DNA from: Rhodosorus marinus CCMP1338
Lineage: Eukaryota; Plantae; Rhodophyta
Direction: 5' to 3'
NCBI GenBank assembly: GCA_029953675.1
Contig: JAMWBK010000002.1
Location: forward strand, 1,860,001 to 1,924,000
DNA: 64,000 bases
Below the pieces are notes generated by a model, which ran no database searches, was not told where the DNA came from, and saw only the letters and a program-made list of their open reading frames with translations. The position numbers and the translations under genes were made by a program. Positions 2,267-49,814 of the stretch are shown here, piece after piece; within the stretch, counting starts at the first letter, position 1; the number at the start of each line of letters is the position of its first letter.

Positions 2267-2889
2267 ATGGAGGTATCTAAGGAGTGCAATATTTGTTGGG
2301 AGGCGCCTGTGCGTGAAGAGCAGGCGATGGTGTCTGTTTGTAAGCATTTGTACTGGTAGGGTGTTCTGATTTCTTCTTCTTTTCTTGGGGGGTTAGCCTT
2401 GTGACTCTAGGCTGGTTTGCTTGCTGGGTCAACTGAGTTGTTCTTTACTTCTTTCTCTTGCTTGTGACTTTGGATAGCACTTCTTGTATTGTGAGCTGGG
2501 GCCTTGTGAATCCGACCTGTCCCTTGTGCAGAAAGACTTTTAACTCGCTCCTGGTCAGGCGTACTGCTGAAGGCTCGCTGGTTTTGCTTGGCAACGAGGA
2601 ATTGGGATGGGTGGAAGAATCGCTTCTCTGCCTACAGGCTGCTTCTCGAGTGAAATTGAAGGAGGTCGAGGAGAGTCCTGGTGACGACCTCTACTCAACC
2701 GGCAACTTCCAGCTGAGCGATCAATCGGTTTCGCTGACATCTCTGCGTGCAACGGTCTACCGTCCAACTACCGCATACCAAGATCATCTCGAGGCCCAAG
2801 TATTCCAGGATCTTCTCGAGGAAGAAGAATTCTACCATCGAAACGAACTGCGCAGCGGCAGACACATGGCAGACTGCTTTCTGCGCTGA
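2267..2889 (+). CDS. Small C3HC4 RING-finger protein, putative E3 ligase, 166 aa, 2 exons (2267-2355, 2478-2889)
   Basis: Spliced product MEVSKECNICWEAPVREEQAMVSVCKHLYC|TSCIVSWGLVNPTCPLCRK gives a complete RING. A GT..AG phase-2 intron restores the frame. Confidence 0.85.
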
Positions 2890-3280
2890 AAAATAGTTCA
2901 CTGCTGTGATGGGAGCCTTACCATATCACTGAGATCACATGCTTTCAAAGCCCTCTACCCATAATATCGTCGCCCTCTTATTTGCGAGTTACGCGTACAC
3001 GTATTCGTTGGACGAATAAATGCCTTGATATTTAAATAATTGTCTATTGTGAAAAGTCAACGTCCGCCTCCCGCTATTCACATGCTCGAGCCAGAGATGC
3101 TCAACGGGCAAGTTCACTTCACTCCTTGAGCTTCCCTACCCTCTTGGAAACCACAATAACCTCACAACACTGTACAGCGTGAACAAGCCCAACAACCGCT
3201 GTCATCTCTTTGGTGAATGGGCAGTCACATTGGAAGGTGTACTCAGTTGTTGCTCTGTTTGAAAAAGTCATAAGAGCATT

Positions 3281-3955
3281 TTAAAAGTGAGCAAACGACA
3301 GCAAGTAAAAATTGGAGCGAGTGTCCAAGGGCTGCAAGCAGCTTCGCACCTTCGCACCTTGAGCTCTCCTGTGTCTACCACTTCCTCGGTACCTTCCAAG
3401 ATCTTCGTCATCGTCCACGTCGAGAGCTATTGCCTGCTCGAGCATGTCCTCGTACAGCTCGCTTCGGTTTCGAACCAAGTGCAACTCATCAAAATCTTCA
3501 ACGCGAAACTCGATCTCGGCTTCGCTCTTTCGAGCTTCCGCGCTACCAAATTTCTCGAGTTTCAACCACGGAGCTTGAACGAGCGAGTACAAACTTTGCT
3601 CGGACCACCCAAGTTCAACGCCGTCGTCGAACAGAAGCGGTTTTCCTCTTGAATCCTTCCGCACAAGCACCGTGTCAAAGTTTTCCTTGCACAAAGGACA
3701 GGATTCCTGAAGCCTCGACCAGCTGACTATACAAGACAGACTATGAAAACCGCAGTCCACGGAAGAACAAAAGTGAGCACAAGAAGAACCCTTTTCAAGA
3801 GATTTATTCTGACGAAGTCAACTAACGTACCAAAAAGAATGCCCACAGGCAGGTAGCGTACCCCGATCCACCTCCTTGGGGGATCCCAAACACACACTAC
3901 ACACTTCTCCACCCGGCGCGGGTAGACCGCAATCCGATGTCTCCTTCTTCAACAT
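3281..3955 (-). CDS. Small C3HC4 RING-finger protein, paralog of the 2267-2889 gene, 2 exons (3955-3831, 3740-3281)
   Basis: Spliced product ...EVCSVCLGSPKEVDRGTLPACGHSFC|LSCIVSWSRLQESCPLCKENF. GTACGT donor; same intron position as the paralog; shared downstream ELGW motif. Confidence 0.85.
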
Positions 3956-5292
3956 CCTCGAACTTAGGTAAACTCGAATACCATAGGCCCTCCTTCAAAA
4001 CTTGCAGATGTCAATCTTCCTCCTTCAAAGTCTCTGGTCCTGGAACAGAGCTTGCTGCCCTGTCCTCGAAAATTCGTTCAGCGAGAAAGAAGTCTATTGA
4101 CTACGAAAGCAGCAAACGACAGCTGTCCTCGAGGGTTTTGACTTGGTGCGCTTCCGAGTCGTCGGCGAAACATCAGTCTGGACTAGACGCAGGAAGGCAT
4201 TACCACACCCTAGCGTAAGCTTGCCGTCGAATGATCTGGAGGGGCCAGAACGAGTTACGAACGGCAACAGCCAGGACTTGGTCAAGAACAGAATTGGTCT
4301 GACCCAGTGGTATGGGCTTGAGCTTTCCGCCGGTAATGTCTGGGGTGCTGCCTTTCTTCCCATGGCGCTGCTCGAAACTACGACGGTGACTTGCTTGAGT
4401 TACTCTGGCCTGTACGCTCAGTAGGTAGCATCTCCGCTCCACTGGAAGGGCATCAGCTTCGTCTTCAATTCAAATGGCCAAGCCTCGCCAGTTTGGGAGC
4501 GTGACTGGTTGCGAAAGGAACTCGCACTTGTTGACTCTGGATCCACACAGACCAGAACAGATTATCATGAAGAAGTTTTCTAGCGGTACCAAGGTGATTC
4601 AGCTTTTTTAGCAAGGTAAACGAAAATTCAATCACAGCCTGTACTGTGGTTCGCGGAGTCAGTGCGGAACAGCTCTCCGCTTCATCACTTATAGTGCTCA
4701 TCGGGAACCACGCTGAACAAGCTGACCGAGTTTTGGGTCGTTTCAATTCAGACGTTCCTTGATACGTCCGAGCCAACTGTGCCATGAAGCGTCTTTCATA
4801 TGCCTAGTAGATCGAGAATAGAAATTGGCAGCAAGCTATCTACACACCTGCAAAACAGTTCCAGATGGTGAGCTTTTCAAGGTGCGCGGGGGGAGGTGTT
4901 CAGACTCTTGGGAATGAAGACTACAGATTGACTCTGTCTTGAAAGACGCACACGGGACTACCTCGTCCAGGTAGTTTGGCTCTGATTAAGCGCATCTGAT
5001 CTGGACTACCCTATGATAATAGATTGAAGGAAACAGTGACTCGCACCAAGGCCAAGGCACAAAATCTGGTCCGCGAGATGATACACGTTGAAATTTAAGT
5101 AAAAACAGATGGGTTGATGAGTTTCCGCCGCCAACGAGATGACAGCTAAGATTTCTGCAAGGTCCCGTCATTAAAAATGAATATTCTGATAACGAATTTT
5201 GAAAACAATCTATTTACATTGTTCTCGTGCTCAACCCGCTTTCTTGCGCTACCACATCGTTGATCGCATACAGGTTGTAACGATCTGAGACA

Positions 5293-5765: not shown

Positions 5766-6795
5766 GAGAGCTTTTAATAACACTCTTGATACAACATCTT
5801 TCAACCTCAATATCACTTATCTGGCTGGTGTTTGGGAGACCGTGTGGATAAGAGGGCGACCTTTAAATGCAAGGATCGAAACCAATTTTTCTCAACGACA
5901 TGGGGTAGTCGTGTCTCACTCCGATCACGAAAACACCAAAGAAAAGCTCTTGTAAATTCTGCTGTCCATCCGTCAGCGCGTGTCTCCCTCAGTCTTACCG
6001 AAGCAAAGTCAGATTCTGAATACTCAAATCTCAACGCATAGCGGCTCTCGACTTATTTCGAGTAGGAACAACTTTTCACATGTTTTAAAAGAAAATAGAT
6101 GAAAAATATCTTGACGAAGGTAACACAGAATTTACGAACAAAAATTATCTGATTTAGTTCTGATTTATGGGGAAAAAGGATTGAGACGCCAGTCATCAAC
6201 CGACTCGCGAAAAACCAAGCAACTTTTTTCATAATTCAGGTGATAAACGTTTCTCGATGAACGCCAATAAAGCGGAAGAAATCCCAAGGGTTTGCCTATC
6301 ATCAGCTTTTATTGGTCATAATAGAAACAAAATTTAATTAGCATATAGTAATTATTTTCAATATTTTGGGAAGATTGTTGACACATTGAATGAATGAATG
6401 GGTGGTTTGTTCGCGGCTCCAACTAATCTCGACAGCCCTTGGCCAACAATCCAACAAATAGGAGCTGAATTAGGCCGTCTGGGGATCAATCAATTTTTGT
6501 TTGGAGTATCCAATTATTTTCGCTCGATTGTGCAAACACTTCAGAATAAGGTCTTTTCCCTCAACTCGGTGATTGACTCTGAAAGGCTTGTCTTCAGGTA
6601 AGTCCGGCCAGGTTGGCACAACCTCAAAACTTTTCTTAAATTTGGGCTAGATTTTCCAGAAAGAACATATGATTATATACACAACCAGCGGACCAAATAT
6701 TTCAATCAAAAGGATATGACAAAGCCAATCACATTAGCCTGCCTCCTCGTGATTGAAAATCCATTCCGTTCCCAGCCTTTTCATTTCCAAGTTTG

Positions 6796-6849
6796 CCAAA
6801 AAAATTCCCCGCGGCGCCCGTAACCCCAAAAAAATTCCCCGCGGCGCCC
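6796..6849. repeat. 24-bp direct repeat, period 30
   Basis: CCAAAAAAATTCCCCGCGGCGCCC at 6796 and 6826. Confidence 0.9.
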
Positions 6850-7092
6850 CCCCCCCCCTTTACGACTGCGTCACCATAAACTCACAACCATTAGTAAGTT
6901 TTCTAGAAATATTATTTTCCACCCTCAATCAAGAATCTATCCGTACTTGATCCACCCAAAAATCCAAGCCCCTCCCCTGCACAACTAGATCGTCACATCC
7001 ATTAAAAACGAAAATCTCACTAGGGACAAACTGTCCTAAAACACAAAAAGAATAATATTTAAAGGACAGGCTGTTTATAGTGACACCGAGAG

Positions 7093-7392
7093 TGTAACGA
7101 TTCAGGTTTCCAACTGTCCGGATCCAAGTTATTTTCCCAAACCTCCACTATTTTTATGTTTTTCTTATCTTGGATACCTCCCTCTAGCTCTCATCCTAGG
7201 AAGGAAGGTCGTAACTCTCGTATTTATAGTCTTCTGACCCATGACCTGGGTATGCTAGATTACTATTATTAGCCAAGACCGTACCATATCTTGCCAGCTG
7301 CGAGCCATCTTGGCCTTACCAGTTTTTGTACCCATTCTGGTTATTTTTAGCCCACCGATACGTTTAGCCAGATGTCAGGTCAGGACGTCACA
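7093..7392 (-). repeat. 3' LTR (300 bp)
   Basis: TGTAACG...GTCACA; matches 10236-10535 with two mismatches seen by eye. Confidence 0.97.
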
Positions 7393-7401
7393 CTCCTCCC
7401 C
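7393..7401 (-). other. Polypurine tract
   Basis: Minus strand GGGGAGGAG lies immediately before the 3' LTR. Confidence 0.85.
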
Positions 7402-7415
7402 ACTGAAAGAGAGAG

Positions 7416-9106
7416 CTACCCGGTTGCTGAAGAGGCTGCTCTATGAAGGTTAACATAGTATCTAATTTGCTTCCGAGTATTCTGATTCTGAGGTAGTTGA
7501 TGGTAAGGTAACCATCTCAAGTCATCGGTGGTCTCACATTGGAAGTAAACGAAATATTCGTCCAGCTGAGCAGCATTCAGTCGATGCCCAAGTACTGACT
7601 TAATCTCTCTTTGTGAATAAGTGGGTAGAAACGCTGTCGTCTTAGGAGTACTTCCTGGTTCAGGTCCATTAAATTTCCGCAAGAGAGATACGTGGAAAAC
7701 GTCGTGAATGTCCTGCTTTCCTCCCAGATCCAACTTGTAAGCGACTTCTCCGATTTTTCGTAGAATCTTAAAAGGTCCAATATATCGGGGTCGAAAAACG
7801 TTTGAACCTGGAAGTTGGAGATTCTGTGTAGATAAAAGGACATAATTTCCTACTTCGTAGCTGATCTCCTTCTTTCCTCGATCATAGTAATGACGTTGAC
7901 ATTCTTGGGCGTAACGTAGGTTAGCTTTTGCGAGCAACCGTTGGTCCTGTTGTTGTTGCATCATAACTGTGGCGGCCTCAGGTAGTGGTCGGGAGGGATT
8001 TTCGCTGGCGGGAACTGTGATGTCAAAAGGTAATCTCGGATTCGCGCCATAAAGCAACTCGAAAGGCGAGAATTGCGTTGAGTCTGAAACCTGGCAGTTG
8101 TAAGCTAGCTCTGCAATTGGAAGGTCGGTCGCCCAGGTCGAGGTTGTTGAATTACATCTCAGGTATGTCTCTAACGTCTGGTTCGTTCGCTCGGTTTGTC
8201 CGTCTGTTTGCGGATGATACGCCGTGCTTAGTTTCTGCTGGATCTTCATCAGCCTCATTAATTCCTTCCAAAAATGCCCCGTGAATTTTGAATCTCGATC
8301 CGAAACAATATTTTCAGGTACCCCCGCGAACCTAATCCAATGACGCATGAATAACTTCGCGGTTGTCTGTGCAGTCGCCGTTGTCGTTGTTGGAAGGAAA
8401 CGGGCGTATTTGGAGAACCGATCGACAATGACAAGGATCGCGTCAAAGCCTTCGGTGGTCGTCGGTAAGGCCGTAATGAAATCCATAGAAATGGATTGGA
8501 ACTTACTATCAGGTATCGGCAAAGGTTGTAGCTTTCCTGCTGAGTATCGCAGTGGCTTCTGTTTCTGGCAGACTTCGCAGGTTCGTAGGACGTCTTCAAT
8601 ATCCCGCTTTAACGTCGGCCAGTAGTATTTCCGCTTTAGTAGACTGATGGTCTTCGTGATTCCGAAATGACCACCCGTAGGTTCCGTGTGGTAGCTTTCC
8701 AAAAGTTCGGGTACCATGGAGTCTGGTATACAGATTCGGTGATGCCGGTACAGGACGTCGCCCCTTCTGATAAAACCTTGCTCCCGATACTTCGGAGGAC
8801 TTTGATAGATCTCCGCAAACTCAGGGTCTTCGAGGTATGCCTGCAACCAGTCCACATCGGTCGTGATAGTGGACTCAACCATCTGTTGCACGGCATGACG
8901 ACTTAACGCATCCGCAATATTCTCCTTGCCTTTTTTATACTCTATCGTAAAGGAGAAGGGCAACAGCCGGTTGACGTAACGTGCTTGCCGTTTGGTGAGT
9001 TCCTTCTGAGAGCGAAGGAACCTCAGCGGGTGGTGGTCCGTCCGAACGGTGAATTCTGAGCCCTCCAGATACATTCTCCAATTTAGGATCGCAGCTGATA
9101 ATGCGA
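7416..9106 (-). pseudogene. Truncated pol: RNase H C-terminus, integrase (HHCC, DDE, GPY/F) and chromodomain
   Basis: Motifs WRMYLEGSEFTVRTDHHPL; YHTEPTGGHFG...CEVC; SMDFIT, DRDSKF, QTERTN; PRYIGPF..HDVFHVSLL; EIKSVLGHR..EYFVYF..RWLP. The frame is open, but its 5' end is cut at the inversion junction. Confidence 0.9.
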
Positions 9107-9552
9107 ATTTTAACAAATGCTTGATCCAGGTTGGAGAAATATCAGACTCGGAGAAATTTGATCGCTTCGTGGAAGGGTTGCAACCAGACTTCAAGAAATA
9201 TATTTACACTCAAGATATAACCACCTTCGAAGAGGCTCAGGCCCTGGCCCTTAAGATCGAAGGAGCGGACATTGCGAGTTACAGCTCAAATTCGCGTAAG
9301 GAACAGACGCCCTACGAACAACCAAAACCGGTACCAAGGGCGACTCCTGCGAGCAGACAAACCCGTTCGGGACGTCAATATCCACCAAGGACGCAAGAGC
9401 TCAACCGAAGCAAATATGCGAACATAATCTGTAACTACTGCGGCAAGACGGGCCATACCCAACGCATCTGTTGGGATAATCCTGACCGAGACATGACGGT
9501 CTCGAAATCGGCTCCGCCGCGAACGCAGCAGTTAAACGATACGCAGCAGTAA
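9107..9552 (+). pseudogene. Inverted C-terminal half of gag with CCHC zinc knuckle
   Basis: Plus-strand FNKCLIQ...CNYCGKTGHTQRICW...QQ* continues the gag seen on the minus strand, but in the opposite orientation. Confidence 0.9.
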
Positions 9553-13137: not shown

Positions 13138-14360
13138 CTAAGATTCATAGAAGAGCTTGTACTGCTCTGCGTACGCCTCATATTCTTCGAGAGTCATTTT
13201 CGCGCTCTGGTCATTTGTAACCTGGGAAAGAGGAACCTTCTCCGATCCAATGGTAATCAAAGGCTCCTCCCCACCGTGCACAGCATCATCCTCCGGCTCG
13301 TTGCCAGGCTGCGTTGTACCCTCAGCAGCGGGCCCGCTCACCACATTGGCCATAGAGTGGTATAGCGTGGGCGCGGCGTCCACGTGAGAAGTATCTCTGT
13401 CCTCGTTTTCCTTGTCCTCCTCATCCTGCACAGCCGACTGAGGTTCGTCGAGAAACCATTTAGGCTGCTGGGGGGCACCTTTGTTCTCAATAGAATTGAG
13501 ATTGCCCGCCTCGTTGTCCTCGATTTCAATGACCAGATCCATGTCGTCCTCATTGTTTGTACGTCCATCCGCCCTAGTAGCACCACCGATGACATCCTTG
13601 GGCAGCATATTTTCTGTCTCTGGGGGCGGTTGAATAGGGATTTCTACCTCGTCGAGCTGGGCGATTTTTTCAAGTAGCGGGCGGAGCTCACTCTCAAACC
13701 TATCTTTCAGGTTCTCGAGCTGCGCCTTCCGGCCCGATACATCTTCCTCCTCCAGCACCCCTTGGCACAATTGCTTTCGATTTATAGGCCTCTTGCAGAG
13801 AAATGATCCGGTAGCGTAATCGAGCAAGTCAACAACTTCCAGCACGGGATACTCCGTTCCGCACCGAGGGCACCGATAGAGAAGTTGTGACGACTTTTCT
13901 TCTGCAACCTTGTCAGCGATTTGCTTCCGTATCTTGTGTACTTTGTACTTGACAATATCAATAAAGCTTCGATAGTCTACAAACCAGTACTCCGCCGTAA
14001 CTCTGCGAGTGCGAGTCGATGATTCCGAAACCGGAATCTGAAACTCACGCTTCTGGCTATGAACGAGATCAATCGCCTTCATCTGTTTCAATGCTGCGCG
14101 AACATCCTGCCTTGGAAGATGTAGCTTGAACACAACGGTATCATCGGTAACACTGCAAAAGGGTACGACCAGGAATTCCAGAGGGATGATTGACGTAAGC
14201 TACTTGGCTCAAAGAATAACACAACACAGATACGGAAGTGAAAGGGTCAACTCAACTAATTTTTTTCCCTCAGAATCGTGTCAGTGATGACAATGAAATT
14301 GTCCTGATAGAACGCTCTCATTGTCATTCTCACCGTATCCATGACAATTCTGTCTACCAT
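13138..14360 (-). CDS. GTF2E1: Transcription initiation factor IIE alpha subunit, 2 exons (14360-14257, 14152-13138), 372 aa
   Basis: N-terminus MVDRIVMDTVRMTMRAFY; YWFVDYRSFIDIVKYK; zinc ribbon YRCPRCGTEY...FLC; acidic C-terminus ending QMTLEEYEAY-like (KMTLEEYEAY). Confidence 0.92.
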
Positions 14361-16087: not shown

Positions 16088-17272
<1,185 letters not shown>

Positions 17273-17802: not shown

Positions 17803-20800
17803 CTACCCCGCACTGGGCGGGCCACTCTTCACTATGCTTCGCAAGCCATAAACGTACGGTCCGCGCACTCCACCTTGCTTGTGCCTATCCCACTCTCCTG
17901 TGACCTCGAGCTGAAGTATTTTGCTGAAGAAGTTCTTCATCTTATAAATTTTCACCTTCGACTGATCAAACTTGCACTCCTTGTGGTACTCGTCCTTCAT
18001 GGTGCACAGCCTCACATAGTCCTTCGAGGTCGTTCGATCCACGTTTTCAGTTAGCTCGTAATATTCAGCAATAAACCTCGCAAGCGAGTAGTATTCGTCG
18101 CTTCGATTCTCGGCAATGCTTCGTAAAATTGAATTCCTATCGGCCAAAGTCAGCTTGGACTTCATCTCGCCCATGTTTTTCGCCGGCGCCGCGGCAGCCT
18201 GAGAACGTGCTGTTTACGGGAGCCAAGGGTAATCCATCGACTTCAATCAGAACTCTGGATGATTTTTTGCGAGGTAGAACAAAACAGGGTCTCCCACTTT
18301 GAACTTACGAGAATTCTTCTCCACTTTGGCTCCTCGAGCTTCGTTCTTTGGTCGCTGACGCTTTCTTCGAGGTTCATTTCTGCTGCTGCTTCCGTAACCA
18401 GCAGAAAGTGCTTTTCCTGTGTCCTCCGTTGCAACTTGTCCCATCCCTCTTCGCTCATAACCCTGCCACGACGACTCTCTGACCGACGCGCTGGGGTATG
18501 CGCTATTGCTCGGGGCTGAGGAATTGGCCTGAGCGACGTTGACTGTCGAGACGCAGTTGGGGATAAGAACTTAATTAGGACAATCATTCTCACTTTTCTT
18601 TAACCGACTGTCCGCGACTAGCAGTACTTACCACCGGGAGGTACTATGATATCCGCAGTACTTGAAGTTCCACCTGCTTGCATCGGAAAGTGCGCAGCGT
18701 AGTTTGGAACAACGGGCGCTTTGGAAAACTGCATCGTCGTGTCCGAACCCCCGCCTGAGCTTACTCCAGCGTAAGGATTACGGTGGGAATGGTAGGTTGT
18801 GCCCGACCGTGGGCTTGAGCCCACCCTTCCCAAGGTCCTAAAGGACGATGCCATGCGGAATGACTGGGACAGGTCCGGTGGGGAGGGGTCATAATGCACC
18901 ATTTGCCACAGCGAAGGCAATAGTCCAATGTTGGTGTTCGTAATCTGCTCGTTTTGGACAGGAATATGCTCCAGTTCGTCTTCCGGCCAGTCTTGAGGAC
19001 GTTCAGCGACGGCAGTCATTTTTGCACTGCAGAGAAGTACACGAAACCGAGACTTTGTTAGTCTACTTTTCCAACTCGTCGTGGTGCATTCCAGCGGTAT
19101 GATACCTCGTGCACTGTATCGCTGACCATCTAATCTTCATCTGCCTAGCAGCCTCTCGAGTGCGCTGCCTTGCCGCTGCCGTCTCTATGATCGGCATCGG
19201 ATAAGTCTCACCAAGTTTGACCCCCGCGGGCTCAAGGACTTCCTTTGGCGCCTGCGAGGGATTGTGGATGTACTGGTTCGGTAAATCTCTGAGCTCCGGA
19301 ACCCATTGACGAATGAAGAATCTTCGAGCACAAAGAAAGCCGAAGACAAAGCGAATATTAGCCGCAACTCCCAAAAGTTTTACGTGCGATCCCCCGAGGA
19401 CAACCTACCCAGTGGGGTCCTGCTTCTGGCCGACACCTGTTGGGTTCACAAGGCAGTTAACGGGGAAAGAATCCAAGTTCGAACCAAAGGACCATTGCCA
19501 CCCAAGAGCGTTCGACGCAGCTTCTCCGTCAACGAGTAAGGCAGCAAACTCAGTCACCCCGACGTGCCAAGGCAGCAGTAAATATTTTGTAACAAAGCTA
19601 GCGAGGAGATATCTGTCGAAGACGAGTTCCGGGGAGTTAATCTCCCGAGCGTGTACGAGAAGAACGCAAATTATTCGTTGCTTCTCACCTGAGGCTGTTA
19701 TGAACCCAGCCAATTTTGCGCAGCTGTCGCATTGCTGCGTCTATGATTGGGTACCCCGTTTGACCCTCCCTCCACTTGGGCAGCGTCGAAAAATCATCCG
19801 ACCAAGGAAACACGGAGAACTCAGGAACGATTGGAGCAACTGCCATCTTTGGATGAGTATAGTACATGTGATGTGCGAAGTCCCGCATGCACAGATTCTT
19901 CAAAAACGCCCTCGAGGCATCCGAGAACGCCTTTTGGCGGGATTCTTTGTCTCCCTGGCGTGCTCGAGCGAGGTTGACCTTCGATGTCTGCTGACGAACG
20001 GCGTGGTAGACCTTTCGAGGGGATATCTCCCCAAATCGTAGGTACGGGGAGAGCTTGGAAGTTCCGTTAAGATCGCGCCGACATCGCGAATCGCCAAAAG
20101 TTGGAAAAGTTTCCGTGAGGAACCGATCTAGAACCTCAAGCGCTGCTGAGGAACCAGTTTTCCATGTCTCCCGTAGGTCAGCATCGCCGGACTTGTCGGC
20201 AATCAGTTGTAAACTTTCCAGATCAACCGATTCCAACTTGGTCTCAATTCGATTCAAATGCCTCGGGGCGGAAAGCGGTGGCGGTGGTGGGGGGAGCGCC
20301 ATCCAAGCCGCCACGTACGAGGGCAATGTTTGATACACTTCGCCATTTGCGTCCTTCAAGTCCCATGGCTCCACCAACAACTCCGACTTGAATGTCGACG
20401 AGGCCACGTTTTTCTTCTTCAGCTCCGCCTGTATCTTTTCACTTATCTGCACCAGCTCCGGCTCGTACACGCGATGCCAAAAGACTGTATCGGCTCCAGT
20501 TTCCTCAACAAGTCTATCAATCTCAGTCCCGTAGGTTTTACCTGTTCTTACAGTGAGCTCGAGGCCCAGATTAGCCAAGTCCTCCGCAAGGCTCTTTAGA
20601 GAATTGTGCAGCCACCTAATCGGAATAAAGCCACGAGTGTAAATTAGTTTTCGGAAGCGCCATCGACATGAGAAAGAACGGAGCACAGACTGCAGAGTCA
20701 GAGGAACGAGTCTGATCAACATCAAACGCACCATCTTCCTGCACGACCAAGAGACCACTCCGATGGCGACCATATGAACACCGGGACGACGGGTCCCCCA

Positions 20801-21531
20801 TGTCGAGAGGCGGCAAGCAGCGCTGGGTGATCGCTTATTCTCAGATCGTGCCCTCGAAACCACACAATTGCCGGACGCCTTTGCTCCTTTGGCTTCCTTC
20901 TCGGGTAGCCCTTTCTGGTTCGCTTCTGCGGAGCCGAACTGTCCATGATCACCTTTGTGATCCGGTTCCCGTTTCCTCGTGAGGTAGAAAGGCTTCGCGA
21001 ATGTGAAGCGACGTGGGCCAAGGCCGCAAGGCTTCCCTCATTCTGATCCGAGTAAGCTCCAGAAACAGAGTACCCAGCAGAGTGCAGCATGGAATATGTA
21101 TTCGAGTTGGAAGGCACCGTTGACTGCACACCCGAGTTCACATAAGCTCCTTGTTGAACTTGCGCACCGGAATACGCTTGCGACAGGTCTTGGCCATGCG
21201 ACAGAGAATGTGACTGTACCCGGGAGGCACCCTGGCTCTGGCAGAGAGAATGGGATCGGGAGACGGACTTTGACTGCGTTCTCGAAGCGCTGTGAGAGTT
21301 GGACCTCGAGTGAGTGTGGGCAACTCCTTCGGAGCACAGATTACAAACTCTTCGCCCTGTACATCCTCCACCAAGCTGTTGACGGTTCCTGTGAGCTTCC
21401 TCATCCTCACCACTCTTTCCCCCGCCGAAGAAAATGCCTTTTTCAACGCCAACTTCATTGCCACAGGAATGTGATCCTGTAGAGGCCTTTTCATATCCAA
21501 GCAAACGCTCACTTCCGTGCTTTAAAGCCAT
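17803..21531 (-). CDS. CRY: Plant-like cryptochrome/photolyase-family protein with long N- and C-terminal extensions, 7 exons (21531-20732, 20615-19689, 19612-19409, 19321-19127 or 19106, 19026-18632, 18542-18309, 18209-17803), about 1,050 aa
   Basis: PHR motifs IVWFRGHDLRISDHPAL, TSKLSPYLRFGEISPR, WREGQTGYPIIDAAMRQL, GWVHNSLR, LPW...DG..SNALGWQW, FIRQWVPEL. All six GT-AG introns are phase-compatible and together account for ORFs 20722, 19685, 19405, 19063, 18618, 18247 and 17803. Confidence 0.88.
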
Positions 21532-24667: not shown

Positions 24668-25626
24668 CTAATCAGGATCTCGTCGGGGGCTGTATATAAC
24701 TGTGGTCACGTATTTACCACGCCATCGGCGCGTTATCCCCAGCACTGTAATGTTTTCGTCCTCAAAATGCCTCGTCGCAGTGTTCAGATGTCCTACACAT
24801 ACATGGCTTGGAATGTCGAGTTGTCCGCCTCCCCGCTCTTTGTTCAAAATTGGATCTCTATATAGCTCAGGTAGCTCAGGGATCTCAGACATGCGCAGCT
24901 CGTCTGTGTTGGGTACGGAATCATCGTATGTTTCAAGTGGGGAGAGCGGCTCCGCAGCCATTGGAGCCTCGTTGGGATCAAAAGCCGATTTTTGCTCTGC
25001 AACCTCTACCACGTTGTTCAGATTACCATGCTCGTCCCTCTCCGTGGGCTGCTCTCTATGCGGCCTCCACTCTCCGTCGACAATATATTTGTACTGGAAC
25101 TTTCCCACCTGAGAAAACAACAGTAAAGTTAACGGAGCTCGCTCTGGTAGAGGGAGGCTCACCTTCGAAGATTAAGATTCGGCTTTCAAGCATGTCTTTG
25201 AGCTTACCGGAAGGAGAAGGACAGCAGTAAACTCGTTTCCAAATCGCGAGAGTGGCTGTTTCGTTTGCCATTGATCCCACGCTCCAGTAACGTATATTTG
25301 CTGGCCTCCAAGATTCCAAGAAAAGGTCGTTGGTACTGGCGAGTCGAGATCTACCACGAAAGAAGAGGAAAACCGAACAAGAAAACAAAAGCAAAGATTC
25401 AGTACCCATCAGCTTGTCTCCATCCGATCCAAAAAGGGAAAAACTTTCAGTTAAACCTACCGACTTCCCCTCCAGCAACACCCAGATCCCCAAACCGACC
25501 TACCGATTCAGCCTCCTCCACGCCGATCTGCCCTCCAACAGCGCCCACCACACCTTCCCCCATCGATTCCGACATCGATAACGACGTCGGAACCGCAAAA
25601 CTTGGTCGTGATGATGAAGTCCCCAT
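24668..25626 (-). CDS. AMPK/SnRK1 beta subunit (CBM48 plus ASC domain); 5' exon uncertain
   Basis: Exon 25350-25208 VPTTFSWNLGGQQIYVTGAWDQW and exon 25108-24668 GKFQYKYIVDGEW...PSHVCVGHL...RWRGKYVTTVIYSP. Candidate start MGTSSSR (25626) fits the N-myristoylation motif MGxxxS, but its splice to the next exon was not resolved. Confidence 0.85.
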
Positions 25627-27025
25627 CCAAAGTTACTCCCCATCCACTACTTCATATATATATATGTATATATATATATTCTAATTACAAACCCATCCTC
25701 CCCACCCCACCCCCACCACCCCCTCCCCAAGCCCTCCCTACCTTAACCAATATCCTTCATTATTTACTCTTCACAGAATTACATATCTCCAATCTCCACC
25801 CAATGTCAAACTCACAACATTTCAGAATCTCTCCCACTGCTTCTCTCACAAGGAACTCGTCCCCTCCACCATCATCACAATCTAACCATCACCGTCCCAC
25901 CCTCCCCTGCCCAACCAACAAAAGAAACCATCCAATCTGACGCATCCTTCCCATCGCTCCAAATACTAACAACATGATGTCAACTAACCCCTTATACGAA
26001 TTCGATCAATTTTCTACTAAACTCCTTACCCTTTACATAAGTTTTATATTCGATTTTAATTGTATTAATAAAACTTTTAGAGGCTGTTTCGTACGGGCTA
26101 AATTGGGGATATTCCCAAATGGAAGAATGCGGGTGAAGTGGGGGGGCTGGTTGGAGTGGATTGTCAAGGTCGATGGAGGTGAGGAAGTTCGGGAAAGGGT
26201 CTGTATGAATTGGGAGGGAGTCGGGAAAGATTATTGATGGTTTGGGGGTTAAGATTCGTAACTTTGAGAACTAGTTGTTTCCCTCCCCCACTCCCCCCTT
26301 TTGTATTCTCCATGTGATCTTGGGTTGTTTTCACAACGGCCGTGGACTGGTTTTGGAAGAATGAGCGACTGAAAATGATTGAGCTGATCATTTCCAGTTC
26401 TCTCCCTCTCTAGTCACACTGAGCCCACTCTGTTTGATTTTTTTGAAAAGAAATCCTGCCATTCGGGTAGATTGACCCTTCCAAGCTCATTGCTTCACTC
26501 TGTACGGGCAGCGGTGATTGAAGCGGAGCCGCTTGTACGCTTTCAGAACATGTGAAAAAGCACTTCAGCGTCTTGTCGGAGACCTATCTAGTTCCGGTAG
26601 GAAATATGCTGATCAAGTGCTCATGTATGAGGCCTGGCTTGAGGAATCCCTTACGTCGAAAGGCTTTGTTTAGCCGTCAAGTTCGCTTGAACCTGCAGGA
26701 GCTCAAAGCACCATGCTGGGAAATAGAAAGGCCGAGTGTAGTCAATGATATGCTGTTCTTGCCCGCTGTTTTAGTGTTCCTCTGATACTCCTTAACGCGG
26801 AGCCCGCTCGTGGGCGGAGGAAGTAGTTGCTGGAAGTTGTAGCCAATTCATGTAGAAATTGGGTACAAGGGCGAGAACCGTTTTCGAAAGTCGTGATGTA
26901 CTGAAGAATTTTGCAACATAGGAGCATAAAGATATGGCGGTGGTCAAGTTCCAAAAATGCGCTTGTTCCTCTCGAGGCCCAATTCGCTAGTTCCGTTCTT
27001 GGAGCGTGCATTAAAGACAGTATTT

Positions 27026-28921
27026 TCAAACCATAACTGGCTGCACAATAGTTTTGAGCTTCTCATAGGCGCTTTCCAAACTGTCGTTCACGATCGTGTA
27101 GTCGAAGGTCTCAGTAGTTGCTGCAAAGGTCATTTCCTTCAGGGCATCGGCAAGCCTCGTATTGAGGATCTCCTCGTCCTCAGTCCCTCTCTCGCGGAGA
27201 CGCCGCTCCAGGGTGTCCATATCAGGCGGTGCTACCCAGATATACAAAGCATCCGCAATTTGTTTCTCGCTCATCATTCGCACTCCTTGAATGTCAAGAT
27301 CCAGAACGCATGTACGACCCGAACCCACAATCTGAAGAGCAGAGAGCAGATCTCATCGTCAGAATTACTGGCCAGGTACGGGAACATCAACCTATGATAT
27401 TACCTTTTCCAGGGAATCTTCTGTTGTTCCGTACAAGTTGCCGTGAACCTCAGCCCATTCCAGGAACTCCCCGCGATCAACCTTATCCTTAAACTCTTCC
27501 CTCCTCACAAAGTTATAGTCAACACCGTCCACTTCCGAGCTTCGCGGAGCACGTGTCGTCGTGCTCACAGAGAAGCCCAATGTTTCAGGATTCTCTTTCA
27601 AAAGCCTCCTAATCATAGTGGATTTTCCAACTCCAGAACATCCACTGATGATAACGAGGTTTCCTCTCGCAACTGCTGACGCGTTCTGAACAGGAAACAG
27701 GAACAAGTTAGACCCAATCGAAAATGCCGTCTGAAGCGCATGAAAACCGTTGTGACCGAACATCTGTTGGAACTTACTGCTTCATCAGCTTTCCTCTTTT
27801 CTGCCATGGACTGAGCCGTAGCTATCATCGTTGAAAGAGTCCCTCGCGGTTTTACTTTTGTCTGCTTCAGATCTGAAACCAATTCTTGTGCACTTTGTCC
27901 AAACAAAGGGACTCTGAAGCTCAAGAATCCAACAGCGGCAGTAAGAACTTCAGGTTTTGGAAGTGAAAACAGTTGAAACCCTATGAAAAGCGGAACTATA
28001 TAGTGAGAAGTAACGAGAATTGGCACGCCCGTGATGCTTCCATTTCCATACCGTCATTGTGTAGTATCAAGAGGACCACAAAAGGGACGACCGGAAGCAG
28101 AAATCTTCCGATGTTTATAGTAATGCCGGATCCTACTCTATCAGTAGCGCGTTGAAGGAATGCCAGGTACCCGACGCCACAGACTGACCCGATTCCAAAA
28201 GTCAAGCCGAGAAATGGACTTGCGAAAATGCCCACAGCGGCTGCTCCAGCAGCACCGGTGAACTATTTGAAAAGCGTTTGCGATTGGTAAGTGAAGTGGA
28301 AGCAGTTGGACTAGGTGTATCAGCTTTTGAAAAGAAGAGTGCAGCTCTTACAGCTGCTTGTCTGAGCAACTTAGCTTTCAGAGCCGCGTATTCTTCAAGG
28401 AACTGCTCTCTTTTGGCAGGGTCAACCTGTGGGATCACAGGGTACCCATCATTCACGTCGTTCACTAGGTAAGCATCTTGCTTCTCTACCACTGTCGCCG
28501 TGGCAGAGCGAACGTCCGCGACATCATACCACCTGCGCTTCTAAGCAGACAGGAAAACGAGCACTCTCCAGTGAAAAAGAAGGTCACGATGTCATGGAAC
28601 AAAACCCTAATCACACACCTGTTTGGACAAATTTCTCGGTCTGGCGTAAAGACTTCCCCCAACAGACTTCAACTCGATCACATCAACGACCGCTGAAGTC
28701 TTATCCTCCCTCAGCTGGACATTATCCACCAAACCCACGGACTCCTGCCCAGGCCACTTCCCAGGTGTAATAACAATCTGTCCTTCCGAAGGAACAAAAA
28801 ACCCACGTCCATCGATCACCTTTGTCTTATCCTTACTCTCACCACAACAAACTACCCCCTTCCTCCTCCTGCCCCCAACTCTAAATCCACTGCCACACAC
28901 AAAGCCAATCCTTCTATCCAT
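27026..28921 (-). CDS. gmk: Plastid-targeted fusion: transit peptide, SH3/KOW-like domain, Atp1/CGL160-like multi-TM domain, guanylate kinase; 6 exons (28921-28619, 28540-28352, 28262-28052, 27995-27778, 27685-27404, 27331-27026), 502 aa
   Basis: GK motifs ISGCSGVGKST, FSVSTTTRAPR..EVDGVDYNF, FLEWAEVHGNLYGT, LDLDIQG. Upstream EEYAALKAKLL...GYLAFLQR...RFLLPVV...VGFLSFRV resembles CGL160/Atp1. All five introns are phase-consistent. Confidence 0.85.
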
Positions 28922-30565
28922 CCTCCTCCTCTCTCCGCCCTCCCACCCCCCAAAAAGCAAAGATCGATGTCAGTACTACTTCATCCTCCCACTTCACCGA
29001 TCACCGCCCTCTCCACACGTCCTCCCCAGCATATTCACAGCTCAGTTTCCCTGACCTTCAGAAGGACACTTCGCCGAAAAAAAACAGACCAGTTTCCCTT
29101 GCCTTTTAAGAAGACGATGACGAAGACGACCGACGCCTCCCCTGAAAAAGCCGCGCTCTCAACTCTCAACTAACTCAGAAGACCTTTATGCCAAACTTGC
29201 ACTGCTACTCATCGCCGGTCCGGTTCATAATCACGACCAATCTCGTCACTCAAAGATTGGAAATGAAAACGGCACCTTATTCGGCAACCGCGTAGGATCT
29301 GCCGACTCCTGCTCCTTCCAGCTGCCGTCGCCGGGTAGTGAAAGTACTCTTTATGTCCATCGGTCTGGTGGAGGAGGCTCAAACAGCTTTGAGAATGAAG
29401 TGGCTCCAGTCTTATTAGTTGGAACCAGGCACCATGGCGGAGAGAACCCTCGGCGGGACGCGTGTACCAAGCATTGTTGTCTATTTCGAAATACTGTCGT
29501 TGTACTAATGAGAGCGCTCCACATACATCGATTGTTCTGCTTCAAGAGGGTGCAATCGGTTTCCAGAATGAAGTGGCTCTGGTCTACCTGGTAGGAACAA
29601 GGCTTTCGGTTTTGCTTAAGGGATGAGCCGCTTGCTGACTCTTCCCGTCTTCCTAATTGATTTGAAGAAGAAGGGTTGCGCTAAGTCGAGTCAGACCGTC
29701 GAAATTTGGTTTCCCCCTTGAGCAAGCGAATCATGATCCACATTATCGAGTTGATGGTGTACGTCTGGATCTTGAGCGTCATAGGCATGTGCTTAGTTGA
29801 TGTTATTAGCTCGGGTAGGCAAGAATTTAAAACTCGTCGAGTGGATGGTTTCACATTAAGCCAAGAATGCCAACCGATAACCGGACCGCAAGCGGACATG
29901 AAGCGCGGGTTCTGGTCTGTATGATAGTGGTTGCGTGATGGAGCTAAAACATCTCTGACAGGCTATATGGATTGGATCTCCTGCTCATGTCAATTGACAT
30001 GACTTGATAAGAAGAGTCTGCGGAAGCAATCCGATCCAGGCCCCCAACCCATCGTCCTATTCAGTCCATTGCGACCACGAGGACGTTTTGTATGCAATCA
30101 GCGATGTCGATCATGGCAGTGGATAACTGATAATCGTCGCGGCCAGAGTATGATCTCATCGCACACTTCCTTGTCAGACTGGTCCACCCCCAAAGGGAAG
30201 AATTGGGCACATTCGTTCCGGTTTATTAAAGCTACTTGCTCGAATGTTACCTACCCTTTCCTGATGGCATTCTCAACGCGTAGACGTGAAGGAAAGCTCC
30301 AGACGCTGAAGGCGCCAGTTCGGCCACCAAGGGCGGATCACCGCTGAACTCTCGGTCAAGGGTTTTCGTGGTGGTCGCAAGCCTGAATCACGCCAAAACA
30401 GACCGTGCGAAATAACATAGAAAAAAAAACATCCACTGCGGCGAACTGGCAAGGCGTTTTGTATATCATAGTCTAGAACCCAACTGAGTCTCCACGACTT
30501 GACCACCAAGGCTGAGTCAGCTCTACCGTAGGGTCATAAAAACAGGTTCAAACTTGCGCAGGTTT

Positions 30566-31960
30566 TCAGTCGCTGAAGACTGCTGCACTTCCAAGCTCCT
30601 GTCCTTCGAGTCCGTTCTCTATGACGTCCTTGAAAAAGTCTTCCAAAGTATCGTTACCGTACTCGGGTCCAACCATATCCTGAACCGCGTAGTATTTTCC
30701 AATCCTTGCAAACTCCGCTGCATCCTTTGCGCCGGGCAGTAGCTTGCTGACGAAGTCCAGAACGGAAATGCCGACGTCCATAACACTGTGCAGCCAACGA
30801 AGAGAGAATGAAGAGGGAAGAGGCGAACGACCTGAACAGGTGATTTCCAAAGCTGGGAGCATCTCTGGATAATAAAAGGAACGACACAGAACTTACCCAA
30901 TGGGTGCCTTCGAAAACTTGGGCTCTCTATCTAAGAGTCTGAAGAGAATTTCAGCCTGTTCCTTTGGGGTGACAGGTTTCCCAGGACCGCCAACGGGAAG
31001 AATTTGGTTGCGCTTTGAAGGATCAGAACAGCAGTTTGCGATGAAGTCTGCAAGATCCCGTTCGCTTATTGCATTGCATTTGCTCAGCTCCCCGTCCCCG
31101 AACATGATATAAGCACTCCCATCCTTAACACGTTTCACCTGGCCTGTTGACAGTTGAACAGATCGCTATGTTCAGCCGACCGGGACCTCGACCTGCAGAA
31201 TATTTTCTCTTCCCCTTACTCACCAGCAAGCGACTTGAAGAACGCAGTAGGTCTAACAATCGAATAGCTGAAGGATTCATCCTTTTCAGCAAGCTCCTGG
31301 AGTTTAGCTTCAAACTTCAGCTTCGCCCGCTGAAACTCCAGAAGAGGCTTCTCCACACATATCGCAGAGAGGAGAATAAAATGACGAGCGCCTCCAGTGT
31401 ACCCTTCCTCAAGACAATTCAAAGTAGCATGATAGTCGATCTTGTTGGAATCCTCAATTCCTCCGCTCCGAGATGCCAGGCACGATACCATAACAGTAGA
31501 TTTGGCGTTGGATTCGACATCAAAGGCGTTCGCCACGCTCGTCCGGTCTGAAACGTTTCCCGTAATGACCTATGACGAGGTTAGGGTCAGACTTTTAGCG
31601 CTCAGGGTCATCCAAAAAAAGACGGATGGATGCAGCTCTAACCTGCACAGCCGCAGGGAAATCCTTTCTCACGTCATCCACACTGTTTTTGCCTTTTACA
31701 CCAGATTTTTCCCTCGTAAACGCACTGACCTGATATCCCCGATTTGCAAACTCAGTCGTAACATATCTCCCAATGTATCCAGTAGCGCCGAACACCACAA
31801 CCCGAACATCCTCTGGTGAAGTCGAAGAATCATAAATGCCTTCATCAACCCGATCCATTCGCGGCCCAACCACACGACGTCTTCTCCCTCGCTCACACAC
31901 TCCTTTCCCAGCCTTCAACTCACCCAACCCAATACCACCACCAACACCAATGAAAGCCAT
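30566..31960 (-). CDS. DVR: Divinyl chlorophyllide a 8-vinyl reductase (NADPH type), plastid-targeted, 4 exons
   Basis: MAF transit peptide; [66 protein letters not shown]. Confidence 0.95.
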
Positions 31961-38021: not shown

Positions 38022-39082
38022 ATGGATGCTACGAGATACTTGACCCGTGGATTCAGAGCACGATTACCTGTTCGCTACCTTCTGGATTCCTGTGAAGAGC
38101 TGTACGGTGACACAGGATGGAGCACCAGGCGAGCGCAAGATGAGCTTGTGGAGGTGTTACAGGGTCAAAAGGATCTCGATTCTTACTGTAGAAGTTTTCT
38201 GAGATTAGTTCTGAGGGAGATAGATCTGTGCCCGAGTGGTCGTGAGGAAATTTCAGAGGACCTTGTGACCCTCGCCGCTCACGCGTGCTCATTAAGCGTG
38301 GCCGCCGGTGACGGAACCATTGCAGAGGTTGCAGAGGCCGCATTCGAATTCGAAGTAGGTGGGGTCAAGCACGACGCCTATGTGTATATATCAAGCGCGA
38401 TGAGCGATGTTCATCTAAGAGTCTGGGACGCTGGGCTGTTCCTGTTCGAATGCATTTTGAGCAAACAGCTCGACATCTCGTCCAAACGGGTCGTTGAGAT
38501 CGGTGCAGGTGCTGGATTGAATCTCGTCGCCTTGCACCTCGCAGGAGCCCAAAGCACGATTCTTACGGACAGGAATGAAATCGCGGTTGACAATCTCGAC
38601 CGAGTCATTGAAAGAAACTCAGCCTCAAATTATGCACGCGCCAGGGTCCTGGACTTAGAGGAGGAGGACGATGCCCGACGCGCCAGCGATTTGCAAGATG
38701 CAGATGTCCTTATAGGTGCTGGTAAGCTTGACGAGCATAGTTCCTTACCAAACTGTGTTTTTGTTCCGTTGTCTAAACGAAAACAAAACCGTCTCTGATA
38801 GATATAACATACGATCCTGCTCTTGTCAAGTCCGTGGTCCGCTGCTACAGCCTCTTCCTTTCAGCCGACAAATCGAAAAGCCGATACGGGTACCTGGCAT
38901 TCACTGTTCGAAGCTCAGAGATGGTCGACCTTCTATACTCCGAGCTCCAGGCAAGGGGTCTCAAGTATTCCGATATAACGCGAGCTGTTGAAGAGAGAAG
39001 AGTACGGTTCTTGGAGTACTGCCGAACCTCCAGAACCGGAAAGCCCTCGGAGATCATATTGATAAGAATCGATCCAAGTTAA
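38022..39082 (+). CDS. METTL21/FAM86(EEF2KMT)-like protein-lysine methyltransferase, 2 exons (38022-38721, 38802-39082)
   Basis: VHLRVWDAGLFL, RVVEIGAGAGL, ILTD, LIGA|DITYDP motifs of Methyltransf_16-type enzymes. Confidence 0.85.
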
Positions 39083-47791: not shown

Positions 47792-49814
47792 ATGCAGGCA
47801 CCTGTGCTCGTGCTAAGTGAGTTGAGCGGGTTCTCCATAGATTTTCTTCTTTGTGGGTTGAGTTTTGTTGGTGTTAGGTTTTATTGACTAATCGAGCTCG
47901 TTTTTTAATTTGGTATGTGAATCGTAGATGAGCAGACTCAGCGGGATACTGGCCGTCGGGCTCAGCTGACTAATATTGCCGCGGCCAAGGTACGAGCGCG
48001 ACGATCGCTTTCTGCTGATGAATCCATCGGGCATGACTCGGTCAGATTTGGAGTTGATGCTTTTGCTAAGATCGTTTTCTTTTTTCAATTTCTGTTTAGG
48101 CGGTTTCGGAGATCATTCGGACAACACTTGGACCACGAGCAATGTTGAAAATGATCCTGGATGCTTCGGGAGGTATTGTTTTGACAAACGATGGAAATGC
48201 GATTCTCAGGGAGATCGATGTGAATCATCCCGCGGCAAAGAGCATCATAGAGCTCTCGAAGACTCAGGATGAGGAGGTCGGGGACGGAACGACATCAGTC
48301 AGCGTTTTGGCAGGCGAGCTTTTGTCGCTTTCGGAGCAGTTCCTCGAGCGGAACATCCATCCGACAGTTGTTGTGAACGGTTTCTTCCGGGCCCTCAACG
48401 ATGCAGTCGCAATCGCAGAAGAGCTCTCCATGCAGATCGATGTTAACAAACCCGGCGAACTCGACAAGGTCGTTGCAAGCTGCGTGGGAACCAAGTATGT
48501 TAGCAGATACGGTGATCTCATGGTGAAAATCGCAATCGACGCTGTGAATACAGTCAAGGTTGAAGATGGGGACCGGATAACCGCTGACTTCAAGAACTAT
48601 GCCAAGGTGGAGAAGATCCCGGGCGGGGACTTGAATGAGAGCAAGGTCTTAAGCGGAGTCATGTTCAACAAGGACGTGGTCAGTGGAACGATGCGACGAC
48701 GTATTGAAAACCCAAGAATCATTCTTCTGGATACGCCGGTGCAGTACCAGAAAGGAGAGAGCCAGACGAACATCGAGCTTACTAAAGGCGAAGATTTCCA
48801 GAGGCTGATGGAACTCGAAGAAGAATACGTCCAGAAGATCTGCGAAGACATTCTCAAATTCAACCCTGATGTGGTTATAAGCGAGAAAGGGATAAGCGAT
48901 TTAGCCCTGCACTTCTTCTCGAAGAAGAATGTCTCTTGCATTCGACGCCTGAGGAAGACTGACAACAACAGAGTTGCAAGAGCCTGTGGCGCCACCATTG
49001 TATCGAGGACAGATGAACTTAAGGTAACTCATACTCCCCGGTGTCTTCCCTTGCTTTTGCAATCTTTCAGGGTTCATATCCATTCACGTTCTTTGTTTTT
49101 GGCTCTGTTAGGAGAGTGACGTTGGCACTGGAGCAGGACTTTTTGAAGTTAGCAAGATCGGTGATGAGTACTTCACCTATGTCGTTGACTGTAAAGATGC
49201 CAAAGCCTGCTCGATAGTTCTTCGTGGCGGAAGCAAGGACGTACTGAACGAGGTGGAGAGAAATCTACAGGACGCTATGTGTGTCGCTCGGAATGTAGTG
49301 AAAAAGCCTACTTTAGTGTGCGGCGGGGGCGCAATCGAGATGGCCATCTCGCATGCGCTGATGGAGAAGAGCAAGTCTATCGAGGGCGTTGTCCAGCAGC
49401 CTTACCAGGCAGTGGCCCAGGCGTTGGAGGTTATTCCCAGGACACTGGTTGTAAGTACCTCTTTCAGAAAGTTGCTCAAACTAGATCGTTCCATGCAAGA
49501 GACTAATGCTAGCGGTATTCTGGTTTGGACGTTTGAAGGAAAACTGCGGAGCGAGCGTCGTGAGAGTTATGACTGCGCTTCGAGCAAAGCACGCCAACGG
49601 AGAAAATACAACTTTCGGAGTCGACGGCATGAAGGGTGAAGTAGTCGACATGAGAACTCTTGGCCTCTTCGAACCTCTGGAGGTGAAGACGCAAACTATT
49701 AAGACGTCCGTGGAAGCAGCAGCTATGTTGCTGCGAATCGATGATGTTGTATCTGGTATTACACGGAAACAAGATCCTGCTAGCGGCCCAGTTCAGCACG
49801 ACGATGATGATTGA
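47792..49814 (+). CDS. CCT3: T-complex protein 1 subunit gamma, multi-exon
   Basis: MQAPVLVLN|EQTQRD...TTLGPRAMLKM, TNDGNAILRE, GDGTTSV, KVEKIPGG, CIRRLRKTDNNR, LLRIDDVVSG. Confidence 0.97.

Follow-up and report, generated by a model that had tools for sequence, protein, structure and literature searches.

Within a 64,000-nucleotide stretch of the Rhodosorus marinus CCMP1338 genome (contig JAMWBK010000002.1, positions 1,860,001 to 1,924,000; hereafter the window), a minus-strand gene of six exons encodes, as one polypeptide from one mRNA, a membrane domain assigned to the CGL160_C/Atp1 family and a C-terminal guanylate kinase (GK). The gene belongs to the nuclear DNA of this unicellular alga. 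Our reading of its product, to which we give a probability of roughly 0.7, is a plastid membrane protein composed of a soluble barrel, a CGL160/Atp1-like membrane domain, a linker, and a catalytically complete guanylate kinase. Old and widespread among red-type algae, the fusion is apparently undescribed. To our knowledge, chloroplasts have no known CFo assembly factor other than CGL160, which has been named as ‘conserved only in the green lineage’. The observations described here widen that distribution, in that red algae have a clear relative with a different N-terminal domain and an added guanylate kinase.

Gene model and transcripts

Reading the minus strand over positions 26700-29300 and splicing the six exons (Table 1) yielded an open frame of 1494 nt, or 497 codons plus a stop. 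The five introns are 78, 89, 71, 92, and 72 nt in length, and all five have GT..AG ends. An earlier note on this DNA, made from the sequence alone, had claimed that six exons splice in frame, and all exons and phases were recovered as it had described them. The spliced product is 100% identical to KAJ8907773.1 (Rhodosorus marinus NDN08_007878, 497 aa), which was retrieved with the first 302 residues, is encoded on a 3.48-Mb contig, and is deposited as a hypothetical protein and named guanylate kinase in UniRef; the gene model of the earlier note and the deposited gene model are the same.

The two halves of the protein meet at intron 4. Exon 4 ends with ...GAA GCA at 27778 and exon 5 begins with AAC GCG at 27685, such that the junction falls between codon 302 (GCA) and codon 303 (AAC). 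A cumulative 906 nt precede the junction, which is therefore in phase 0. The letters of the intron read GTAAGT...GGGTCTAACTTG...CCTGTTCAG, with CTAAC inside and TTCAG at the end, exactly as in the phase-0 boundary GCA/GTAAGT...CTAAC...TTCAG/AAC (27778/27685) that had been proposed. Retention of this intron would shift the frame to a stop at 27613 (open reading frame [ORF] 27613..28026) and truncate the protein after the membrane domain. Separately, an ATG at 27763 inside the intron is in frame with the kinase (27392-27763). Intron retention or use of this ATG could in principle uncouple both halves, and no transcript evidence for either was seen.

Transcript-derived proteins from R. marinus cross the junction. 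A 497-aa protein from another isolate (P0003, MMETSP) is 92% identical to the window protein, falls in the same 90% cluster as KAJ8907773.1, and aligns without a gap from residue 25 to its C-terminus. The four introns beyond that residue, including the one at the CGL160/GK junction, have therefore been removed in a real mRNA, and the first junction is supported in that both proteins are co-linear and equally long. Another transcript product (P0004, 212 aa) begins within exon 4, at Met286, and spans the domain junction; Met286 is not conserved in the next relative, and P0004 may be a 5'-truncated contig. Two separate transcripts, the outcome that the earlier note had named as fatal to a fusion, are contradicted by both products.

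Domain composition of the encoded protein

The membrane domain opens with an amphipathic helix (EYAALKAKLL), followed by membrane helices at residues ~163-177, 180-205, 216-232, and 243-274. AlphaFold predicted helices at residues 142-177, 180-205, 216-232, and 243-274, with predicted local distance difference test (pLDDT) values mostly >85, and hydropathy peaks match the model for helices 1-3. The Pfam family CGL160_C (PF24763) matched residues 146-264 over profile positions 7-131 of 133 (E 6.7e-5), with a score of 23.7 bits that, for the window protein alone, lies below the gathering cut-off of 34.2 bits. CGL160_C was also matched by 24 of the 28 full-length fusion homologues (best E 2.6e-12), and several of the retrieved relatives exceeded the cut-off, with 41.3, 43.0, 40.2, 50.4, and 35.2 bits.

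A profile of residues 1-302 and those of the closest homologue (two sequences) was scored against 1.84 billion representatives, which yielded 172 matches at E <= 0.001. Among the retrieved proteins that lack a kinase (n = 35) were 30 with CGL160_C (best E 5.3e-29), six with ATP-synt_I, and 10 with DUF7755; named matches in this group were from Chlorokybus atmophyticus, the angiosperm Bienertia, and the glaucophyte Cyanophora paradoxa. Comparison of the red-type family with a set of green, glaucophyte, and cyanobacterial CGL160/ATP-synt_I sequences by hhalign gave 99.9% (E 6.3e-34, 192 columns), although this set had itself been retrieved with the red-type family profile and is not fully independent, whereas the Pfam matches are. 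The segments EYAALKAKLL, GVGYLAFLQRATD, RFLLP, and VGFLSFRVP line up with consensus positions in both profiles (eY..LK..LL, G..YL.LLqr.VD, Rf/Rl, and lGFl.yK(v)). Four strings that had been judged by eye to resemble CGL160 (EYAALKAKL, GYLAFL, RFLLPVV, and VGFLSF) all occupy conserved family positions in the hhalign alignment. Profile similarity is thus present in this region, and the earlier assignment to CGL160/Atp1 holds at the level of the family in both Pfam and hhalign. We accept the membrane domain as a predicted member of the CGL160_C/Atp1 family. The whole protein is not accepted as a functional CGL160 orthologue because the green N-terminal domain, which recruits CF1 via its beta subunit, is absent.

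It is very unlikely that the likeness of the membrane region to CGL160 is one of hydrophobic composition only, in a generic four-helix anchor. The sub-threshold single-sequence score and the proneness of membrane helices to spurious profile matches would suit such an anchor, but the match spans nearly the whole Pfam model and includes polar motifs (EY..LK..LL, YL.LLQR..D, RF, and GFL.[YF][KR]). Moreover, homologues exceed the gathering score, and the family-profile search of 1.8 billion proteins returned almost only CGL160_C/ATP-synt_I proteins.

The regions that flank the membrane domain are a presequence, a barrel, and a linker. Phenylalanine near the N-terminus is typical of red-algal transit peptides, and the basic presequence, with Phe7 and Phe13, is a putative plastid transit peptide of this type. 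The barrel has a general SH3/Tudor-like shape, is beta-rich at residues 49-130 in the full model, and when modeled alone by AlphaFold reached a pLDDT of 92.8 and a predicted template modeling (pTM) score of 0.81. It matched no Pfam family, and a Foldseek comparison to the Protein Data Bank (PDB) returned no significant match, the best (E 0.08) being Tudor/Agenet/PWWP-like barrels at a TM-score of ~0.4. The barrel is conserved in red-type homologues and weakly so in the glaucophyte Cyanophora. No convincing similarity to the green CF1-recruiting N-terminal region was found by hhalign in the region upstream of the amphipathic helix. The linker holds a VKPRGTLST motif that is conserved between the two closest species, and includes low-confidence stretches at residues 276-289 and 296-309. 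The full AlphaFold model, built on 28 homologues, has a mean pLDDT of 82.9, with a disordered segment at residues 1-31 and a confident kinase at residues 312-496.

Four membrane helices place both soluble domains on one side of the membrane. That side is probably the stroma, by homology with Arabidopsis CGL160 and because the kinase needs ATP and GMP. Arabidopsis CGL160 has a role in assembly of the c-ring and of CF1, and protease protection has located its N-terminal domain in the stroma (PMC9806626).

The C-terminal domain matched Pfam Guanylate_kin (PF00625) at residues 311-493 with 180.9 bits (cut-off 25.2; E 2.5e-53; profile positions 3-180 of 182) and the NCBIfam GK equivalog TIGR03263 with 212.5 bits (cut-off 160.45; E 3.4e-63; positions 1-179 of 180), E-values that exclude an assignment by chance. 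All 13 key residues are present (K323 and S324 of the P-loop; S343, R347, R350, E353, Y359, E378, Y387, T389, and D409 for GMP binding; and R444 and R455 of the lid), and the Rhodosorus kinase is catalytically complete in sequence, in that every catalytic residue that was checked is kept. A fold search with the full model matched the kinase part only, with yeast GK (1GKY) at the top (E 3e-20, target-normalized TM-score 0.87, root-mean-square deviation 2.5 over 184 columns). In alignments to solved GKs, yeast 1GKY scored 182 bits, the human enzyme 158, and the Escherichia coli enzyme 144. The earlier note had called the domain a plastid or bacterial guanylate kinase; a complete GK it is, but the plastid/bacterial type was not borne out, as the best solved matches are eukaryotic. 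A word-indexed search with the GK domain returned mostly stand-alone bacterial and eukaryotic GKs of ~50% identity and no clear nearest group, and we claim neither a cyanobacterial nor a host source for the kinase. Purpureofilum, a related red alga, encodes a separate 188-aa GK that is 51% identical. This stand-alone enzyme is consistent with separate cytosolic and organellar isoforms, of which the fused copy would be the organellar one.

Distribution of the fusion and possible roles of the kinase

Mapping of three query segments onto all retrieved proteins identified the barrel, membrane domain, and kinase together in 34 clusters and the membrane domain and kinase in 10 more, and a C-terminal GK-like domain was detected in 69 of 157 retrieved proteins. 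The same architecture is present in Porphyridium purpureum (KAA8495622, ‘guanylate kinase’, 559 aa), Compsopogon caeruleus (A0A7S1TBH5, 528 aa), and Cyanidiococcus yangmingshanensis (550 aa). Together with Rhodosorus, the named members place the fusion in four red-algal classes, including the deep-branching Cyanidiophyceae. Thirty-one aligned sequences of the N-terminal and membrane regions, used as the query of a word-indexed search, retrieved three proteins only, since hydrophobic words saturated the candidates, but added Cyanidiococcus.

Two homologous fusions are encoded without introns. A 71-kb metagenomic eukaryotic contig (L003, positions 2650-4473) carries a close Cyanidiococcus relative as one uninterrupted ORF of 607 aa, and another homologue is likewise a single uninterrupted ORF (L004, positions 6001-7719); the fusion is therefore independent of any predicted splice. 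Intron 5 of Rhodosorus, in the kinase domain, has a phase-0 counterpart at the same position in the closest homologue, which is 53% identical (L001, positions 1294-1382, after ...QK). The JGI protein P0002 (419 aa) is the product of this L001 intron being retained in an assembled transcript.

Homologues without the kinase occur in Cyanophora (barrel-like and membrane domains, 278 aa), in the cryptophyte Teleaulax (barrel, membrane domain, and charged tail, 489 aa), and in green relatives. Addition of the kinase in the stem lineage of red algae would explain this distribution most simply. Several of the green-lineage proteins (P0126 from Bienertia, P0155 from Chlorokybus, P0134, P0108, and P0128) combine DUF7755, which is PLAT/LH2-like by eye, with the CGL160_C membrane domain. 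They represent a further CGL160_C architecture, which differs from that of classic CGL160 (P0152-type) and of which we saw no discussion in the CGL160 papers that were read.

Residues of the P-loop, GMP site, and lid were scored in the full-length fusion alignment and then in the 69 proteins that matched a family-specific GK profile. Twelve or 13 of the 13 residues are kept in 21 of the 69, including every named red alga, and Rhodosorus and all named red-algal homologues keep all 13. Approximately 40 of the 69 keep nine or fewer, having lost Ser, Arg, Glu, and Tyr of the GMP site, Glu378, Thr389, and the lid arginines (P0034, P0040, P0051, P0053, P0054, P0062, P0098, P0116, and ~30 more); most of these retain a P-loop-like G-x-x-x-x-G-[KR]-[ST]. 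PDB entries 9JAE (human S37P) and 4F4J both name the serine that corresponds to S343, and the title of 4F4J describes a GK enzyme turned into a binding protein. In most degenerate proteins that align at this position the serine is replaced by W, L, F, P, or others, and in many other degenerate proteins the whole GMP-binding segment is deleted. Dead GK domains are kept in many relatives, and catalysis therefore cannot be the only role of the domain.

A hydrophobic stretch with an aromatic residue after small residues is the bipartite signal pattern of complex red plastids. Most N-termini of the degenerate class have a strongly hydrophobic, signal-peptide-like stretch followed by such an aromatic residue (SVAF/S, TEAF/T, CNAF/Q). 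Catalytic-class proteins mostly lack the hydrophobic stretch; of the 15 that were listed, 10 carry a Phe among their first ~11 residues. Cluster look-ups returned no organism names for the degenerate class, which, to judge from these N-terminal patterns alone, probably derives mostly from algae with complex red plastids.

Within our preferred reading, we are most confident that the protein would reside in the plastid thylakoid with the barrel and the kinase both in the stroma. With less confidence, and by homology, the membrane domain may act in CFo/c-ring assembly as do CGL160 and Atp1. Third, the kinase would be the plastid enzyme that converts GMP to GDP, tethered to the surface of the thylakoid, the site of ATP production. 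Least confidently, the kinase fold might also have a non-catalytic structural or binding role at the stromal face, a role suggested by the many relatives that keep the domain after loss of the GMP site and catalytic residues. Tethering might serve substrate supply (ATP from CF1), co-regulation with ATP-synthase biogenesis, CF1 docking, or mere co-targeting. Coupling of ATP output to plastid GTP supply, as suggested in the earlier note, is plausible and is complicated by the pseudo-kinase relatives. If such coupling is functional, ATP-synthase biogenesis or local ATP supply would be linked to plastid GTP/ppGpp metabolism.

Several points weigh against this reading. The N-terminal domain shows no relation to the green domain by which CGL160 recruits CF1, and functional equivalence to CGL160 is not guaranteed. 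The relative placement of the domains in the full model is unreliable (pTM 0.45). The window protein itself had no direct match to ATP-synt_I (PF03899) at E <= 10, to which are added its sub-threshold CGL160_C score, the partly dependent hhalign set, and the N-terminal patterns from which the taxonomy of the degenerate class was drawn.

A possible, although clearly less probable, alternative is that the kinase domain is mainly structural, serving ATP-synthase assembly as a module for docking or nucleotide sensing in the stroma, and is the red-lineage counterpart of the green CF1-recruiting domain that red-type proteins lack, with catalysis kept in red algae as a secondary function. The ~40 clusters that have kept the domain and a P-loop-like motif despite the losses described above argue for such a role, as does replacement, in most relatives aligning there, of the serine whose change to proline makes GK a protein-binding module (4F4J and 9JAE titles). 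However, retention of all 13 catalytic residues in Rhodosorus and all named red algae argues for selection on enzyme activity, and no binding partner is known.

That the fusion is a convenience of targeting or anchoring, in which a plastid GK borrowed the presequence and anchor of a neighbor while the two activities stayed independent, is more doubtful. Fusions often arise by intergenic loss, intron 4 sits in the inter-domain linker, this linker is long and disordered, and the kinase-less Teleaulax homologue implies that the membrane part can work alone. Yet the fusion has been kept in four red-algal classes and in a large and diverse set of clusters, and it has been kept even with a catalytically dead kinase, which is hard to explain by enzyme delivery alone.

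More speculative, and in our view improbable, is that in the red plastid lineage the GK fold has taken the place of the green CGL160 N-domain, as a module in the stroma by which CFo is coupled to CF1 or ATP-synthase assembly is gated. In red algae this fold would be an active enzyme, possibly responsive to ppGpp or guanine nucleotides, and in algae with complex red plastids it would be a pseudo-kinase purely for binding or sensing. If true, ATP-synthase biogenesis would be wired directly to the guanine-nucleotide/stringent-response state of the plastid. Finally, an annotation artefact, in which a predicted intron joined adjacent CGL160-like and GK genes, is scarcely credible: the in-frame ATG at 27763 and the 212-aa product holding the kinase end only would fit it, but the 497-aa product of the second isolate aligns without gaps over the junction, the 212-aa product has its start within exon 4 and hence crosses it, intron-less single ORFs encode the same fusion elsewhere, and the architecture is common to >40 clusters.

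Genomic surroundings and comparison with known systems

The surroundings of the fusion gene are ordinary eukaryotic nuclear genes (Table 1). The 592-aa ORF among them is a remnant of a Ty3/gypsy-type retrotransposon pol gene. Scans of the window for tRNAs and Rfam families were both empty.

Table 1. Coordinates, within the window, of the fusion gene, its parts, and other features.
Feature	Position	Strand	Remarks
Whole coding region, ATG to TGA	27026..28921	minus	six exons, 497 aa
Exons	28921-28619, 28540-28352, 28262-28052, 27980-27778, 27685-27404, 27331-27026	minus	
Intron 4	27686..27777	minus	92 nt, phase 0, within membrane domain/kinase linker
Intron 5	27332..27403	minus	72 nt, phase 0, after ...LEK, in kinase domain
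Presequence, residues 1-33	28823..28921	minus	basic, Gly/Ser/Cys-rich, Phe7 and Phe13; disordered (pLDDT 31-36)
Soluble beta-barrel, residues 34-135	28439..28822	minus	spans intron 1; predicted by AlphaFold
CGL160_C/Atp1(UncI)-like membrane domain, residues 141-275	27859..28423	minus	spans introns 2 and 3; from Pfam, hhalign, model, hydropathy
Flexible linker, residues 276-309	27665..27858	minus	spans intron 4; pLDDT 42-58
Guanylate kinase, residues 310-497	27029..27664	minus	spans intron 5; from Pfam, TIGR03263, residues, fold
P-loop GCSGVGKS	27643-27620	minus	
GMP-binding S-x-TTR-x-x-R-x-x-E-x-x-G-x-x-Y	27565-27509	minus	
Lid arginines	27205-27155	minus	
592-aa ORF	7416-9194	minus	RNase H, integrase zinc-binding, integrase core, Tf2-type SH3
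TFIIE alpha	13138-14133		
Polyubiquitin gene	16103-17272	plus	five head-to-tail ubiquitin repeats
DNA photolyase/cryptochrome	19685-20863	minus	DNA_photolyase and FAD_binding_7; downstream neighbor of fusion gene, same strand
AMPK/SnRK1 beta subunit	24668-25162	minus	CBM and AMPKBI; downstream neighbor of fusion gene, same strand
NmrA-like exon	31595-31960		
Lysine methyltransferase	38022-38798		
CCT chaperonin exon	48142-49119		
P-type cation-transporting ATPase	54171-57755	minus	1194-aa uninterrupted ORF

In public databases the protein appears as ‘hypothetical protein’ or ‘guanylate kinase’, and for some homologues the architecture of two Pfam domains is available there precomputed. A description of the fusion was not found in the literature that was searched; most subscription papers lay outside that search, and this is an absence of evidence only. 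CGL160 papers treat the family as one of the green lineage plus diatoms and discuss the green N-domain only (PMC9806626, PMC4383579), and conservation of Atp1 in diatoms was noted by Fristedt et al. (PMC4383579).

The closest characterized system is Arabidopsis CGL160 (At2g31040, O82279), which like the Rhodosorus protein is nuclear-encoded and has a presequence and a soluble N-terminal part followed by a four-helix membrane domain with the same motifs. A role in both c-ring and CF1 assembly has been demonstrated for the plant protein alone, and CGL160/Atp1 function, with interaction with CFo-c/b and promotion of c-ring assembly, is known from Arabidopsis and bacteria only (PMC9806626, PMC4383579). 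The window protein differs in that its N-terminal domain is a beta-barrel, a fold other than that of the green N-domain, and in that a complete guanylate kinase is added at its C-terminus. Cyanobacterial and bacterial Atp1 (UncI, PF03899), the evolutionary source of the CGL160 membrane domain (PMC9806626), is likewise a small four-helix membrane protein, and six ATP-synt_I proteins were retrieved with the red-type profile. Unlike the window protein, Atp1 is ~120-140 aa in length, lacks soluble domains, and has its gene in the atp operon.

The kinase resembles yeast Guk1 (1GKY), human GUK1, and the plant plastid/mitochondrial enzyme GKpm/V2 (At3g06200) in having a full GK domain with all catalytic and GMP-binding residues, and like GKpm, which is inhibited by ppGpp (PMC10107265), it is presumably an organellar isoform. 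In contrast to characterized GKs, which are soluble, it is tethered to a membrane protein, and no precedent for such tethering was found, all GKs in the literature and among the solved structures that were compared being soluble. The GK-like domains of MAGUK proteins kept the GK fold while losing the GMP-site serine and catalytic residues. This likeness extends to the ~40 related clusters only, and the loss is absent from the window protein. Catalytic and dead kinases within the same architecture provide a natural experiment in which catalytic and structural roles are separable, the Rhodosorus domain differing from MAGUK domains in that it keeps the serine and all catalytic residues.

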